From positions 1 to 64,000 of the IMG/VR virus record IMGVR_UViG_3300027573_000779: a stretch of 64,000 nt of DNA, one strand, 5' to 3'. The translations under genes and the position numbers were made by a program. Under the pieces are notes generated by a model. It was not told where the DNA came from. It did no database searches and was given only the letters and a program-made list of their open reading frames with translations. Positions within the stretch are counted from its first letter, which is position 1, and every line of letters begins with the position of its first letter. Of the stretch, positions 8,720 through 18,287 are shown one piece after another.

Positions 8720-9050
8720 GCTGTTTGGGCGAAATAAGCTTTCGCTTTACTTCTACATAATGATTTGATTTGCTATCTGGATTTGCATAACCAACTTCTC
8801 TTTCAATACCAATAATTGACGCGGTATAAACTCCGTCTGAAGAAGCTCTTTCAATAGCTTTCTCAAGAACGTCACTGCGTTTCTTTTCTACGTATTTATA
8901 AAGAAAATGACAAACGCCTAAATTACCTACAAGTTCAACTCTCCGTTCAATGAAATATTTGTTGTATGTTTTTGCCGCTTCTACAGGTTTAATAAACAAT
9001 CCAATAAACGGAAGTGACGCTAATAGATTGATAAAATTCCTTCTTTTCAT
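8676..9050 (-). CDS. Hypothetical protein with twin-arginine (Tat)-like signal peptide
   Basis: MKRRNFINLLASLPFIGLFIKPVEAA. Confidence 0.6.
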   Translation of the reverse strand: MKRRNFINLLASLPFIGLFIKPVEAAKTYNKYFIERRVELVGNLGVCHFLYKYVEKKRSDVLEKAIERASSDGVYTASIIGIEREVGYANPDSKSNHYVEVKRKLISPKQLEAMFELGKNWSSV

Positions 9051-9779: not shown

Positions 9780-9936
9780 TGATGGATGTAATCAGATTCG
9801 AACTGATACCACGCCCTTATTAGGCGTTAAAGCTATTTCATCAATCTGCTACTAGGCTTACAGAGGATATCATGGTCTGCTCTCCACAAACTAACTACTT
9901 TAATCTTTACGATTGCTACCGTTACAACATACACCC
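9780..9936 (-). ncRNA. 157-nt tRNA-like RNA with alanine identity (G3.U70, A73) and a ~90-nt insert replacing the anticodon arm
   Basis: GGGTGTA/TACATCC acceptor, TTGT-AACGGTA-GCAA D arm, ATCAG-TTCGAAT-CTGAT T arm, 3' ATCA. Confidence 0.75.
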
Positions 9937-9942
9937 ACAAAC

Positions 9943-12135
9943 TCACAAGTATTTCGACAAAATCATATCTGTCTCAAATGGAGTCGTTTCAGCCGAAAAA
10001 ACCACGTCTGCCTTCTCTGATTTATTTACCAACTTTCCGCGACCTTCTGCGTGCATAGAAAGCAAATCAAACAGATTGGGTTTAACAAGTTTGCACATTG
10101 CCTTACAAACCAAGCTAGTACTCTTTGAATTTGCGACCGCTGCATTTACAAAGTTTGGATTAGATTTCATTGACAAGTCTAACCATACTACTTGCCGCTC
10201 TTTAACATCAATCAGTAATGGTAGAGCTACCGCTGTATCAGCCGTAATGTCAATTTTGTTTTTGACAGTTCGAGCCTCAAAAATTTCACCTGAATTGGGT
10301 TTTTTGCGACCCATCCAACCCGCAAAACATTCTGGCAAATCATGATAAGGTTGTCCAGTATAGCAACGAACACTCATTACAATATAGCGTCCGTTTTGTT
10401 CCATTACATTACTCATTGGAATGTCAATGAATTCCGCTGCTCCATTAGGGGCATTAGTAATATCCCCACTGTGAGCGCCGCCCATATCCTTGAGATTATA
10501 ATACGCAATATCAGTTATGCGTTCAAAGTCTTCGCCAAGAATGGTGGCTGTTAAATCAATATCTGTTCTGCTTTCTCCGTTTTTCCACCAAACAAAGAAG
10601 CGAATGGTGTCGTAATCCCCATCCAAAGGAATCTTGGAACCTCTTACTAGGGTCTTAAGAGCTTTGGACGCACTACGTTGTGAAAACGGAACCTTATAAT
10701 TCTTTAAAGCATCATCAAGATACACGTTACCCAAAGGCTCTAGTTCCGAAAAGCGAGCTACTAAAACATCTCGTGCTTCTTTCACCACTGAATCACAAAA
10801 AGTCTGATTTAAGGGTATAGGAGCAGTATCCAATACTTTAATTTTGGCCAAGTTCCCCTTAGGGAATACAGCATGAAAATCATTTTGATTGCGTTCTTTG
10901 AAATGAGTAAACACCTGAAGCAAAACAGGAGTAGAAACTTTTGAAGCTACGTCTGAAAAACACCCTAATAGTTTCTTGCGCTCTTTGTCACTAGACGCAA
11001 GCCTAAAGATATGGTCCAGCCTTCGGGCAAAATCTCCCGGTCTAGTCCTAAGAAGTTCTACACTCTCTTTTAAATCTCCTTCTAAAAGAGATTTTTCGAC
11101 TTTTGAGTTGAAAGTGACAATTTTGACGTTATCACGTAATTTTGAAAAAGCAGCGAAAGTTACCGGAAACTGTTTCTTATAGTCGCCGGGATGAAGAACT
11201 TCCCCAAGCCTTATCCAACGTTCATCATATTTAACCATTTCTTCGGCTAAACTTGTTTTGCAGGACTCAAGAAGTCCCAACAAAAACTTCCTTTTTCCTC
11301 TTGGAATTTTGATAAACTTGGTCGTATCCGCAAGTGACACGTCTCCTCCGCACAAAGCGGCAGCTAACCTCAATACATCCGTAGGGGTCTTTACATACTT
11401 CTCTAAGATTTTAGCAGAAGTTGTAAAAGAAATCATCCCACTCGCCACAACCGCAAGTTGTTCTTTGTGGGAAATAGTTTCTGGCAGCAAACGAACGATA
11501 TCGTTTTGATAATACGCAATAAAACTTAAAACAATCTCTTTGTCGGACGCTGAGATAGAAGATTTAGCTTGTACTAAAGAAGTAAAAATGGACTCAAAAT
11601 CATTTATGTCGCCAAGTTCAATAGTGTCAAGTTTAACAGGTTCAGCTAACGGCAACCTTTCTTTCTTCTCGTAAGTGGGAAGCCAAGTATCATCTATTAA
11701 ACCTAAATCCTTGAGCCAAAAAGTCCAGTAATGGCGAATCGCATTAGAGTAAAGCTCAAACTCGCTCATATCCATTACTTGTTGGGGGAAATTTGGATAC
11801 ATTGGCCTGAAAGCCCTATGCGCTCCCCGCATTGTCTTCAGAACAGGAACAACTTCTGCATAAAAATCAGACAGTTGAGACTCAGTCAAGCGACTAAGAG
11901 CCTTAAAAAGAGTTGGACTGATGACATAACCTAGACTTTCAAGGTTCTTATCAATGGTCCCAACAAGCAAATCATTGTCCGAGCTTCTGCCTAATGGGGG
12001 AATAACCTTTAAACGCTTCTCTAGATAGATTTGAGTTACGTTCAAAGATTGCGGCACCTTGGTAACAATCGGCACTTGAGTTTTAGTTATTGCCGCCACT
12101 GGCCGTCTGATTGTTCTTCTAGTCGTTGTTCTCAT
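9943..12135 (-). CDS. Large helical (TROVE/Ro-like) protein with C-terminal TerD-like domain
   Basis: C-terminal IRFFVWWKNGESRTDIDL...HSGDITNAPNGAAEFIDI TerD-like motifs; the N-terminal RPGDFARRLD helical region is Ro-like by recalled family resemblance. Confidence 0.7.
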   Translation of the reverse strand: MRTTTRRTIRRPVAAITKTQVPIVTKVPQSLNVTQIYLEKRLKVIPPLGRSSDNDLLVGTIDKNLESLGYVISPTLFKALSRLTESQLSDFYAEVVPVLKTMRGAHRAFRPMYPNFPQQVMDMSEFELYSNAIRHYWTFWLKDLGLIDDTWLPTYEKKERLPLAEPVKLDTIELGDINDFESIFTSLVQAKSSISASDKEIVLSFIAYYQNDIVRLLPETISHKEQLAVVASGMISFTTSAKILEKYVKTPTDVLRLAAALCGGDVSLADTTKFIKIPRGKRKFLLGLLESCKTSLAEEMVKYDERWIRLGEVLHPGDYKKQFPVTFAAFSKLRDNVKIVTFNSKVEKSLLEGDLKESVELLRTRPGDFARRLDHIFRLASSDKERKKLLGCFSDVASKVSTPVLLQVFTHFKERNQNDFHAVFPKGNLAKIKVLDTAPIPLNQTFCDSVVKEARDVLVARFSELEPLGNVYLDDALKNYKVPFSQRSASKALKTLVRGSKIPLDGDYDTIRFFVWWKNGESRTDIDLTATILGEDFERITDIAYYNLKDMGGAHSGDITNAPNGAAEFIDIPMSNVMEQNGRYIVMSVRCYTGQPYHDLPECFAGWMGRKKPNSGEIFEARTVKNKIDITADTAVALPLLIDVKERQVVWLDLSMKSNPNFVNAAVANSKSTSLVCKAMCKLVKPNLFDLLSMHAEGRGKLVNKSEKADVVFSAETTPFETDMILSKYL

Positions 12136-12151
12136 TTTTTTTATAAAAGTA

Positions 12152-12213
12152 AGCGGAAACCGGTAAAGCTGGATTTTAGGATAAATTTAGAAGGAAGCTC
12201 TACCATAGCCGCT
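12152..12213 (-). ncRNA. Y-RNA-like hairpin, copy 2
   Basis: AGCGG/CCGCT closing stem, GGTAGAGCT/AGCTTTACC inner stem, conserved GAGCTTCCTTCTAAA. Confidence 0.6.
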
Positions 12214-12222
12214 CGATTTAAC

Positions 12223-12291
12223 AAACCGGGAACCACAAAAGCTGGTTTCATTCCAATAGATTTTAGAAGGAAGCTCTTATATAGCCGGTTT
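12223..12291 (-). ncRNA. Y-RNA-like hairpin, copy 1
   Basis: AAACCGG/CCGGTTT closing stem, AAGAGCT/AGCTTTT inner stem, same GAGCTTCCTTCTAAA core with different stem sequence. Confidence 0.6.
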
Positions 12292-12319
12292 GAAATTTCA
12301 AAATTCATCAACTGTCTGT

Positions 12320-12347
12320 ATCATACCAAATCTTTTCGAAAAGTCAA
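12320..12347 (-). promoter_or_regulatory. Sigma70-type promoter TTGACT-N16-TATGAT driving the hairpins and the TROVE-TerD gene
   Basis: TTGACTtttcgaaaagatttggTATGAT. Confidence 0.65.
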
Positions 12348-12357
12348 CAGGAAAAAA

Positions 12358-12444
12358 TGGTCCGAGAAAGGGCGCTCGCATCCCTACGGTATTTCTACAC
12401 CAGTTCCCAAAACTGGCCCGGTACTGTTTACGGTCTACTCTCGG
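12358..12444 (-). tRNA. tRNA-Pro(UGG) with an extra variable arm, A18 and G55
   Basis: CCGAGAG/TTCTCGG acceptor, CCAGT-TTTGGGA-ACTGG anticodon arm, 14-nt variable region with GTA-GAAA-TAC hairpin, T loop TGCGAGC, ACCA. Confidence 0.82.
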
Positions 12445-12466
12445 TTTCAAAAGCACAAAAAATACG

Positions 12467-12775
12467 CTATTTTAAACTCAATAATCTTTTACAACATTCA
12501 TCAATGGGATTAGCAGCTTGGGCTATCTCTGGATGACGTTCAATTAAAATTGCACAACAAAGTTTCCATTCTTCAACATGACTGCCGCCTAACATTTCTA
12601 GTTCTCGAACTATTCCTTCAAACTTAAGACAGTCATTAAGCCAAGCATTACATAAAAGGTCGCAATAATCAATTGAATACCCCGCTTCCTTTACAAGCTC
12701 GAAAATCATATCCAAAGGAAGTCCATGAGTGTCTTTTAGCTGAAAAACACCTTTGAAGAGTAGTTTGTCTTGCAT
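12467..12775 (-). CDS. Stand-alone fragment resembling the alanyl-tRNA synthetase tRNA-recognition helical domain
   Basis: GVFQLKDTHGLPLDMIFELVKEAGYSID matches the AlaRS AFxLYDT(Y/H)GFPxDLTxxIxxExGxxVD motif. Confidence 0.65.
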   Translation of the reverse strand: MQDKLLFKGVFQLKDTHGLPLDMIFELVKEAGYSIDYCDLLCNAWLNDCLKFEGIVRELEMLGGSHVEEWKLCCAILIERHPEIAQAANPIDECCKRLLSLK

Positions 12776-12820
12776 AAAATGGAGTTAAGCGGATAATACC
12801 TTGTAACCCCAAAAAAACCT

Positions 12821-12988
12821 AATCCTAAAAATGAACCGAATCCCGATTCTCCACGGTCATTTTCCGCATCCCTTTCAGGGATAACCCTTTTCGGGCTGCT
12901 ACCAAACGGATGTTTTAATTTAATTAATCGTATCTACTGATGGTTTCGCTATTAATCCCATCTGTATTTAAACTACATTTTTAGGACT
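12821..12988 (-). ncRNA. Unnamed ~168-nt structured RNA immediately 3' of tRNA-Gln
   Basis: 13-bp closing stem AGTCCTAAAAATG/CATTTTTAGGATT; internal hairpins GATGG/CCATC, GCCC-GAAAA-GGGT, ATCCC-TGAAA-GGGAT. Confidence 0.55.
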
Positions 12989-12996
12989 AAGTAAAT

Positions 12997-13070
12997 TGGC
13001 AGGCACAGTTGGTTACGCTCCAACGCCCCATGGTCCAAAGCCACGTACGCTACTATTACGCCATGTGCCA
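12997..13070 (-). tRNA. tRNA-Gln(UUG) with A18, A54, G55, U58 and a U1.U72 mismatch
   Basis: TGGCACA/TGTGCCT acceptor, CGTGG-CTTTGGA-CCATG anticodon arm, GTTGG-AGCGTAA-CCAAC T arm, GCCA. Confidence 0.9.
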
Positions 13071-16835: not shown

Positions 16836-17063
16836 TCAAACTTGTTTGTTTAAATTTTTAATAATAGCTCGAACAAGTCTAGGTTCCGCACGAACATATT
16901 GACAAGCCAAACATTCACAGGTCCAATCTTTTTTCTTGTGAAAAGCGTCAATAACATGCATTGTGCCAAGTACGTCTAAACCTACGTTACGAACTTTAGA
17001 TAAAGCTAGTTCTTCTTGTTGTTCTGGTGTCATAAAAAATGGAGCCAAAGATAGGATTTGCAC
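16836..17063 (-). CDS. Hypothetical protein
   Basis: ORF track; CECLAC motif; start may be at the internal MTPEQ. Confidence 0.55.
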   Translation of the reverse strand: MQILSLAPFFMTPEQQEELALSKVRNVGLDVLGTMHVIDAFHKKKDWTCECLACQYVRAEPRLVRAIIKNLNKQV

Positions 17064-17123
17064 CTACAAATGAGAATTCACAAAATTCTTCCTGTTCTAG
17101 TTGAGGCACTTCGGCAATAAAAC

Positions 17124-17499: not shown

Positions 17500-18287
17500 A
17501 AGTCTGAGACTACAACTTAGATTACTAGTCTTTCCGAAGATTATCAAGGCTTTGCGAGCCTCTTTCCTCCGTTATCCTCATAAACCCTTTAATGGCATCT
17601 ATGAACCTAGCATGGCTGCATTTTTACAGGTTGCATTTCCTGCTACCCATCACTCTACTCGATGTTCACTTTCTGTCTAGCTTGCGGCCAGTTAAGGATT
17701 ATTAGTCCAACATGCAGCGAAACAATCAACTAAATCACCCCTTGCGAGGGCAATCCAGTCTCCATTACCTTGCGGCAGGAGAATTAAGCCACTTTCGAGT
17801 GACAGAGGAAACGTCTTTGCTTTTTATATCATAGAACGATATGTTGGGATTACACCAACGCATCTAACAGCGACGTGCGTTTCCTGTCGTTTCATATCCT
17901 TTTGGGATACAAAATGCGACACGCCGCTTGCCTTTCATCTTGCAGACTACTCAACCAGATTACTCGACTTTGGATAACTTTTTAAGGGTTATCCATTACC
18001 GTTTAACCTTGCTATTAAGCCCTTGCTTGCATGGCTTGAACTTAATAACTCCTCTTTGTCCTTAGCTGTCGCTGTTTGGCATGATAATATATTAGATTGC
18101 GAGTCTAATACCCCTACTCACCGATTGGCTCTGTAGGTTTAACTATCCAGCTTCCAGTTACCTCACGTTATCGTAAGGTCTCAGGACTGAGTTTGCCTGA
18201 ATATCCCTTTGGAAAGGGCGCGAGGTTAGTTAGCACCTTCGCCTTTCGCCGTCTTGCGACGGGTTATTTAACGTGGTCAGGCCCACA
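17500..18287 (-). ncRNA. GOLLD-like giant ornate ncRNA (~790 nt)
   Basis: ORF-free, many GNRA-capped hairpins (GTC-GCAA-GAC, CCCTC-GCAA-GGGG, CACTC-GAAA-GTG), 5' loop GCCTGA complementary to TCAGGC, 3' GAGTAG...GATAATC...GAAAGACTAG...GTAGTCTCAG as recalled for GOLLD; located within a tRNA cluster. Confidence 0.7.

Follow-up and report, generated by a model that had tools for sequence, protein, structure and literature searches.

A structured RNA gene abuts the gene for a helical–TerD protein across bacterial phyla and large phages

A small structured RNA, modeled here as R1 (~65–75 nt), and a protein made of a large helical domain and a TerD domain (~700 aa) form a conserved unit. Across bacterial phyla and in large phages, their genes abut on one strand as a locked pair, and the RNA structure is held by compensatory changes around invariant nucleotides. 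The unit is present in a 64,000-nt stretch of the IMG/VR virus record IMGVR_UViG_3300027573_000779 (positions 1 to 64,000; the whole stretch is hereafter the window), where two R1 hairpins precede an open reading frame (ORF) of 730 aa on the minus strand. R1 and the protein most likely form a ribonucleoprotein that parallels the Ro60–Y RNA particle without being homologous to it; their binding is what we infer. An earlier reading of the same DNA (the original prediction) had placed both in a four-part system of an alanyl-tRNA synthetase (AlaRS)-like mini-protein, two Y-like hairpin RNAs, a Ro-like/TerD protein and a tRNA-shaped RNA carrying a G3.U70 pair. The features that make up the pair and its presumptive promoter are as follows:

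12320–12347, minus strand: sigma-70-like promoter match, TTGACT-16-(TG)TATGAT (10/12 consensus positions)
12222–12292, minus strand: R1 RNA copy 1, or hairpin 1 (R1 covariance model, 71.5 bits, E 3e-16)
12151–12214, minus strand: R1 RNA copy 2, or hairpin 2 (R1 covariance model, 58.2 bits, E 3.7e-13)
9943–12135, minus strand: ORF of the 730-aa partner protein (phrog_33734, E 9e-95; AlphaFold2 model)
10156–10653, minus strand: TerD-fold domain, residues ~495–660 of that protein (Foldseek and invariant columns)

Both window hairpins belong to a structured RNA family in which a P1 stem leads through an internal loop (GGCUAU/GCUUUCC) to a 9-bp P2, capped by a loop that opens with UCCUUCUA. Copy 1 has a P1 of CAAACCGG/CCGGUUUG, an internal loop of CUAU/GGUUC, a P2 that passes through AGAGCU/AGCUUU and a loop opening with UCCUUCUAAA, while the P1 of copy 2 is GAGCGG/CCGCUU. 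The copies are spaced by 73–76 nt, copy 2 being a direct repeat of copy 1 with 88% and 76% identity over two blocks, and a scan of the window with the R1 covariance model returned these two hairpins only. An alignment of 22 copies made with MAFFT (alignment A1, with hairpin 1 among its seed rows) displays a 6-bp P1 whose inner two pairs are G-C, an internal loop in which the 5′ strand CUAU faces the 3′ strand GCUUU, a 9-bp P2 and a loop opening with UCCUUCUAA. RNAalifold found compensatory changes in 10/12 pairs of this alignment. When a 15-pair structure is laid over it, 85% of the cells are paired (60% when shuffled, 34–51% when the partners are slid), and its covariation score is 0.64 compared to 0.17 for the control, a value reached in 0/500 shuffles. 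The 92 bacterial copies described below (alignment A5) are 97% paired with a covariation score of 0.91 compared to 0.18, figures that are inflated by the fitting of this alignment to the R1 model. Across R1, the elements GGCUAU, CUUCCUUCU, AG, U and CC are at least 90% conserved, and the invariant nucleotides are kept alike whether R1 is 5′ or 3′ of the gene. Most loops span 16–31 nt. Copies that share a locus are not near-identical repeats; their helices diverge with compensating changes.

R1 is apparently an undescribed class of structured RNA. Apart from chance-level matches, Rfam 15 has no match to the window hairpins at E ≤ 10, including for a 191-nt query run with lax filters, and at the gathering score it has nothing at the R1 positions in the loci of 10 relatives. 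The deposited records of phages XacN1, Weasels2 and LpeD carry no annotation at the positions of their R1 copies, and a literature search found no paper describing this RNA. With its hundreds of members, R1 is an addition to the known classes of structured RNA. Among the chance-level matches, hairpin 1 (12219–12291) scores 12.5 bits against Vault RNA, where 34 are required (E 4.3). The TROVE protein TEP1 has Vault RNA as its partner; we take the match as coincidence.

R1 is tightly linked to genes of the TerD-containing family in phages and in bacteria. In short-word BLAST searches with the hairpins, matches flank phage genes for homologues of the 730-aa protein, whose products are 35–45% identical. 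Among 30 nonredundant phage loci, the R1 model made 88 matches, with at least one in 30/30 loci and 87 on the strand of the gene. These lie within ~600 nt upstream or 1 kb downstream of it, and phages carry two to six copies on one or both sides of the gene. Four closer relatives (59–62% protein identity) hold eight matches, and 3/4 cultured phages (XacN1, Weasels2 and LpeD) have R1 copies. Bacterial species loci gave 92 matches in 75/80 loci, all of them beside the gene and on its strand, and three further bacterial loci each have R1 (3/3, three matches). Taxa represented among the 80 loci include Acidobacteriota, Planctomycetota, Verrucomicrobiota, Armatimonadota, Bacteroidota, Bacillota, Cyanobacteria relatives, Chloroflexota, Alphaproteobacteria and Saccharimonadales. 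Within the 596 kb that these loci comprise, there is no R1 match away from a TerD-family gene. The hairpin RNAs and the 730-aa protein of the original prediction are thereby borne out as a conserved RNA–protein gene pair.

Position and copy number vary among bacteria. In 56 loci R1 precedes the ORF, mostly within ~120 nt of the approximate start codon, and in 15 it follows, mostly starting 6–15 nt past the stop codon and in many cases in Bacteroidota. No bacterial locus has R1 both upstream and downstream, and most have a single copy. No protein gene recurs in the flanks of more than 5/80 loci, which indicates that the module consists of the RNA and the protein. Five loci of Melainabacteria/Obscuribacterales (L073, L078, L086, L089 and L092) have a second R1 copy ~800 nt further upstream, with an ORF of 120–291 aa between the copies. 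Cultured carriers of the pair include Xanthomonas phage XacN1, in which the protein is ORF396, Rhodococcus phage Weasels2 and strains of Bacillus and Paenibacillus.

The partner protein combines a helical domain (residues ~30–480) with a TerD beta-sandwich followed by C-terminal helices. An AlphaFold2 model built with 85 homologues has a predicted local distance difference test score (pLDDT) of 92.5 and a predicted template modeling score of 0.90. Its significant Foldseek matches in the Protein Data Bank (PDB) are solely the TerD structures 3ibz and 2qz7 (E 3e-5 to 4e-4; template modeling score, TM, 0.60–0.74 by target), and the helical region makes weak matches of solenoid type (E > 0.06). 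Pfam TerD (PF02342) is found in 9/50 homologues (best E 7.6e-10), and the window protein itself matches no Pfam family at E ≤ 1. Residues H555, S556, G557, D558, E568 and D571 are invariant, forming an HSGD...E..D motif, as are many arginines and lysines. The TerD part of the original label is therefore right, by Foldseek and by Pfam in the homologues. Its Ro-like/TROVE part found no support in Pfam, PDB profile, Foldseek or Atlas searches: TROVE is not among the 25 listed of 40 Pfam families in 50 homologues, a PDB profile search with the 730-aa protein came back empty, Ro60 is not among the best 50 of 556 Foldseek PDB matches, and the ESM Atlas structure search listed no TROVE family. A Foldseek search of BFVD returned family members and TerD domains and nothing else. 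We rejected homology to Ro/TROVE, as these searches led to TerD and family members only.

In the Atlas, the RING-bearing SCO0854 family has the 450-aa helical domain too (TM 0.86 over residues 30–480), and NCBIfam NF041916 (MXAN_6230/SCO0854 RING family) matches the 730-aa protein with E 4e-122 and 409 bits, the best stretch covering profile positions 383–760 of 842. The window protein thus shares the helical domain and the TerD region with these RING proteins but has no RING and falls below the family cut-off of 600 bits. Our literature search found no paper mentioning the MXAN_6230/SCO0854 family, and nothing of relevance on phrog_33734. The phrog match listed above (phrog_33734) has no annotated function, and family members are named "TerD family protein" in their sources or are otherwise hypothetical. 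More than 3100 clusters at 50% identity make up the family, with at least 566 matching stretches in a bacterial collection of one genome per species, plus many phages. For so large a set of TerD-annotated and hypothetical proteins, a linked and covarying RNA is the first functional clue.

Classical TerD proteins are stand-alone proteins of ~190 aa in ter operons. The 730-aa protein shares with those of the Ter stress systems the TerD fold and the acidic HSGD...E..D motif, but here TerD forms the C-terminal part of a 700-aa protein whose helical domain takes up 450 aa, and it is coupled to an RNA, and the bacterial loci have no Ter partners nearby. TerD domains are mostly discussed as binders of Ca2+ or of nucleotide derivatives (PMC7159879). 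In a search that was thin in subscription journals, we found no paper that ties an RNA to TerD proteins or to the SCO0854 family. Three homologues of 1066–1075 aa (P0128, P0134 and P0166) bear an N-terminal ankyrin-repeat region of ~370 aa.

One alternative is that R1 is an inhibitor of the protein, in the manner of a type III antitoxin, or a substrate that it processes, in which case the pair would serve abortive infection or competition between phages and not RNA quality control. In type III toxin–antitoxin systems, near-identical tandem RNA repeats lie upstream of a small endoribonuclease toxin. Tandem RNA copies directly 5′ of the protein gene on the same strand would fit this arrangement, as would the ankyrin-repeat fusions and the association of TerD proteins with phage and stress resistance (PMC7824862). 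However, R1 copies of one locus diverge with compensating changes, bacteria mostly have one copy that is at times downstream, and no nuclease-like domain is found in the 730-aa protein by Pfam, Foldseek or Atlas. A PADLOC search for defense systems gave no match and hence no membership in a known one. We rejected membership among type III toxin–antitoxin systems on the divergence of the copies, the size of the protein and its lack of a nuclease domain, and the PADLOC result, and we give the broader inhibitor or substrate explanation only a small chance.

What makes the R1–protein pair analogous to Ro60 and Y RNA is the RNA and the way the genes are arranged; the fold of the protein has no part in the analogy. 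The distal loop of R1 tolerates insertions, and tRNA-like modules occupy it in loci L027, L030, L031, L033 and L021 and in the bacterial locus L099. In four of the copies (L027:2914–3055, L030:8682–8815, L031:8477–8610 and L099:5141–5271) the module runs in the order canonical T-arm, closed acceptor-like hairpin and canonical D-arm (e.g., UAGCUCAGUUGGUAGAGC). Another copy (L027:3392–3520) holds an entire cloverleaf in which a tetraloop replaces the anticodon loop (47 bits with the Rfam tRNA model). Y RNAs of the YrlA type, whose genes adjoin those of Ro60, have a tRNA-like domain with the same permuted order of T-arm, acceptor-like stem-loop and D-arm (Chen et al. 2014, PMC4201824). The original comparison with Y RNAs was thus apt, as R1 relatives hold a permuted tRNA-like module in YrlA order.

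Likenesses between the two systems extend to several levels. Both join a protein gene to one or more adjoining genes for small structured RNAs, in bacteria and in phages. Both RNAs combine a variable distal module with a basal stem that contains a conserved asymmetric loop, and the tRNA mimic in T-arm, acceptor-hairpin, D-arm order is shared by YrlA and a subset of R1 relatives. The fold of Ro60 is a HEAT-like ring closed by a vWA domain. In the 730-aa protein, too, a large helical domain precedes a C-terminal domain of metal-binding type, but TerD stands where vWA would be, and neither TROVE nor vWA is detectable by profile or fold. In contrast to Y RNA, R1 has no GNCGAAN0-1G motif and no Ro-binding helix, and instead has its own conserved set (GGCUAU / CUUCCUUCU / UUUCC). 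No Y_RNA or YrlA match was made in Rfam by the window hairpins at E ≤ 10 or in the loci of 10 relatives at the gathering score. Nor do the bacterial R1 loci have the RtcB or PNPase neighborhood of Ro60.

In one possible mechanism, the protein would bind R1 at its invariant internal loop and at the pyrimidine-rich strand of the distal loop, giving rise to a ribonucleoprotein in which the variable distal part of the RNA would act as an adaptor or decoy arm. Where that part mimics tRNA, it could engage tRNA-binding factors, and the TerD domain might sense Ca2+ or nucleotide derivatives. If the pair does form such a particle, it would be a second, nonhomologous system in which tRNA-mimicking RNAs are encoded beside their protein, the purpose of the tRNA-like module, which is an open question for Y RNAs, could be tested in a new setting, and the TerD domain would be tied to RNA biology.

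Several observations weigh against a ribonucleoprotein. The 730-aa protein has no recognized RNA-binding domain, and the ligands mostly discussed for TerD domains are the Ca2+ and nucleotide derivatives named above. Both window copies of R1 are without the tRNA-like module, and most members are plain hairpins. There is no R1 match in 5/80 bacterial loci (two of these five are cut near the gene start) or in phage WXIN, and the bacterial pairing figures carry the inflation mentioned above. One of the two main rivals is a role purely in cis, since R1 always abuts the ORF: R1 would regulate or stabilize the TerD-family mRNA, perhaps as an autoregulatory operator to which the encoded protein binds or as a ligand-sensing leader, and would have no function as a separate RNA. 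Adjacency on the same strand is what this explanation expects, as is the single copy usual in bacteria. In the window, hairpin 2 ends 15 nt ahead of the ATG of the 730-aa ORF, and both copies follow the promoter-like site at 12347–12320, whose predicted transcript start is ~20 nt ahead of hairpin 1, so that both hairpins would be in the leader of the pair transcript. The promoter is called by consensus match alone, and 10 such sites occur in the region where 7.1 are expected.

However, a cis element does not readily account for R1 copies past the stop codon in 15 bacterial and many phage loci, for the two to six copies in phages on either or both sides of the gene, or for invariant nucleotides that are identical in 5′ and 3′ copies. 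The large tRNA-like insertions likewise have no obvious purpose in an operator. Occurrence 3′ of the gene and in multiple copies suggests that R1 is a partner RNA and more than a leader alone, and we consider a purely cis role unlikely.

In phages, the ribonucleoprotein that we favor may act on tRNAs. Phage R1–TerD loci sit within co-oriented arrays of tRNA genes, a setting that would suggest that the pair serves the quality control of tRNA or RNA, or takes part in conflict over tRNAs. We tentatively propose, with somewhat less than even confidence, that the pair represents an undescribed and widespread class of ribonucleoprotein that arrived independently at the Ro60–Y RNA design, and that during infection by large phages it works from within the tRNA island, sensing, protecting or decoying tRNAs.

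The tRNA arrays of the relatives also encode other RNAs. ROOL, skipping-rope RNA and phage tmRNAs are found there (L014:11583–12180 and 10308–10374; L030:3436–3835; L021:1679–2081). tRNAs with the anticodon CUA (amber), which ARAGORN labels "tRNA-Pyl", adjoin the module at L028:5226–5304 and 8882–8956 and at L033:5267–5342, and may be suppressor tRNAs. Genes with DUF4326 and His_Phos_1 domains recur 3′ of the TerD-family gene in phage relatives, DUF4326 also in XacN1 (neighbor genes at L040:9709–10679, L042:8658–10166, L043:6849–7580 and L128:4691–4981). A Thg1-like gene is nearby in L042 and an RNA ligase gene in L139. These neighbors may reflect a loose link to RNA-end chemistry.

All of the parts that the original prediction listed are present and co-oriented on the minus strand (window 9783–13070), as established from ORFs, Rfam, folds and the R1 model. 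Beyond the pair itself, this region holds the following:

13000–13070, minus strand: atypical tRNA (Rfam RF00005, 44.3 bits)
12776–12999, minus strand: folded spacer of 224 nt (folding energy compared to shuffles)
12467–12775, minus strand: ORF of the AlaRS-like mini-protein, 102 aa (sub-threshold AlaRS matches)
9783–9936, minus strand: tRNA-shaped G3.U70 RNA, 154 nt (sequence reading and constrained fold)

The mini-protein carries the tRNA-reading loop of AlaRS without its catalytic machinery. It matches Pfam PF01411 (E 1.8e-5, 24 bits compared to a cut-off of 30.3), TIGR00344 (E 7e-5, 21 bits compared to 457) and PDB AlaRS 1riq/3htz (E 0.04), three independent profile and sequence searches that agree on a sub-threshold AlaRS match of ~35 residues. 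By BLASTP, residues 3–36 align with E. coli AlaS 388–421 (E 1e-4 in a single comparison). In the loop K14-D15-T-H-G18-L-P, D15 corresponds to Asp400 and G18 to Gly403, and Tyr399 is replaced by lysine (K14). In AlaRS, Tyr399, Asp400 and Gly403 contact the minor groove at G3.U70, and D400A is nearly inactive (PMC6055181). The original reading of the Asp400 motif is thus upheld by the D15 and G18 alignment. The mini-protein shares with AlaRS this G3.U70-reading loop and its Asp400 and Gly403 counterparts but has no class II catalytic core, no Asn303 region and no full tRNA-recognition domain. Its AlphaFold2 model is fair (pLDDT 80.7); no Foldseek match is significant, and 4/18 weak ones are AlaRS catalytic fragments, including 3htz (42 columns, 2.2 Å). 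A profile search found 35 family members, and Atlas matches hint at a broader group of ~85–90-aa phage proteins. The aspartate and the glycine are at least 90% conserved among 16 members.

The mini-protein is a chance neighbor of the R1–TerD pair in this phage. It is missing wherever else the pair was examined (34 loci of phages, four of closer relatives and 80 of bacteria), and no co-occurrence was found by tblastn (40 loci), in scans of IMG/VR and JGI metagenomes or in four long-contig contexts. Conversely, seven contexts of other mini-protein relatives (four with 8 kb per side) contain no R1, TerD-family gene or tRNA. One of its relatives is located between terminase and portal genes.

The RNA at 9783–9936 has many marks of a tRNA, and a tRNA-like RNA is a plausible reading of its sequence. 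It begins 7 nt past the stop codon of the 730-aa ORF and finishes 7 nt short of the next ORF. Its acceptor stem GGGUGUA/UACAUCC is a perfect 7 bp (G1-C72, G2-C71, G3.U70, U4-A69, G5-C68, U6-A67 and A7-U66) with A73. UG at positions 8–9 is followed by a D-arm (UUGU-AACGGUA-GCAA, with GG). A long irregular arm of ~82 nt then replaces the anticodon arm, and after it come a hairpin resembling a variable arm and the canonical T-arm (AUCAG-UUCGAAU-CUGAU); UCA stands where CCA is expected. Constraining the fold to a cloverleaf costs 0.5 kcal/mol (−38.8 kcal/mol compared to a minimum free energy of −39.3). The window has two T-arm matches of canonical pattern, neither in a called tRNA, and this one alone is followed by a matching acceptor strand. 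We estimate that a 7-bp acceptor partner within 230 nt arises by chance in ~1 in 5 cases, so that the argument for a tRNA-like RNA lies in the features taken together and in how exactly the RNA fills the intergenic gap.

Compared to tRNA-Ala and the tRNA-like domain of tmRNA, the 154-nt RNA has the G3.U70 pair, A73 and the T- and D-arms in common but differs in its ~82-nt arm, its lack of an encoded CCA and its lack of recognition by models. The Rfam tRNA model gives 15.9 bits at this position, where the threshold is 29. ARAGORN calls no tRNA there and no tmRNA anywhere in the window. We rejected a tmRNA on the lack of an ARAGORN call and on the open frame through the RNA, which ends without a typical tag, and a third R1 copy on a score of <6 bits with the model filters off. 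No relative of this RNA was found beyond this phage. The G3.U70 RNA is therefore a neighbor in this phage, outside the conserved pair.

These distributions bear on the four-part system of the original prediction, in which the mini-protein would read the G3.U70 RNA while a Ro-like ring with Y-like RNAs serves as scaffold, forming a machine for tRNA decoy, repair or ribosome rescue. All of its parts are on one strand inside 3 kb, the mini-protein retains the Asp and Gly of the G3.U70-reading loop, and the RNA has both G3.U70 and A73. However, the combination occurs in one phage only, the R1–TerD pair is without the other two parts in >110 loci, and relatives of the mini-protein occur in unrelated contexts without a tRNA, R1 or TerD gene. 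There is also no Ro fold, and the promoter-like site divides the mini-protein gene from the pair. Co-occurrence in relatives had been named beforehand as the test of this system; it holds for R1 with the TerD protein and fails for the mini-protein and the G3.U70 RNA. We therefore regard the four-part system as highly improbable. That the mini-protein might recognize the G3.U70 RNA is an idea that comes from one genome.

The phage RNA island that holds the pair also houses the mini-protein, the Gln-type tRNA and the G3.U70 RNA, each as an element of its own. The tRNA at 13000–13070 had been labeled tRNA-Pro, and is more likely of Gln type, as its anticodon loop in the Rfam alignment, CUUUGGA, gives UUG. 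It has a U1.U72 mismatch, G73 and a noncanonical T-loop (AGCGUAA), and ARAGORN calls no tRNA at this position. A second tRNA found by Rfam and not called by ARAGORN is at 17043–17115 on the minus strand (43.7 bits). Further along, at 17501–17929 on the minus strand, is a full-length GOLLD RNA (Rfam RF02032, 194 bits) flanked by tRNA genes, and its location between co-oriented tRNA genes marks this phage segment as an RNA-gene island. Finally, the spacer at 12776–12999 folds into several hairpins within a long outer stem, with a minimum free energy of −63.1 kcal/mol (z −3.25) and equally stable folding in 1/200 shuffles. It contains a 17-nt inverted repeat (I2) and a terminator-like hairpin (12849–12833), and may be a further RNA gene.

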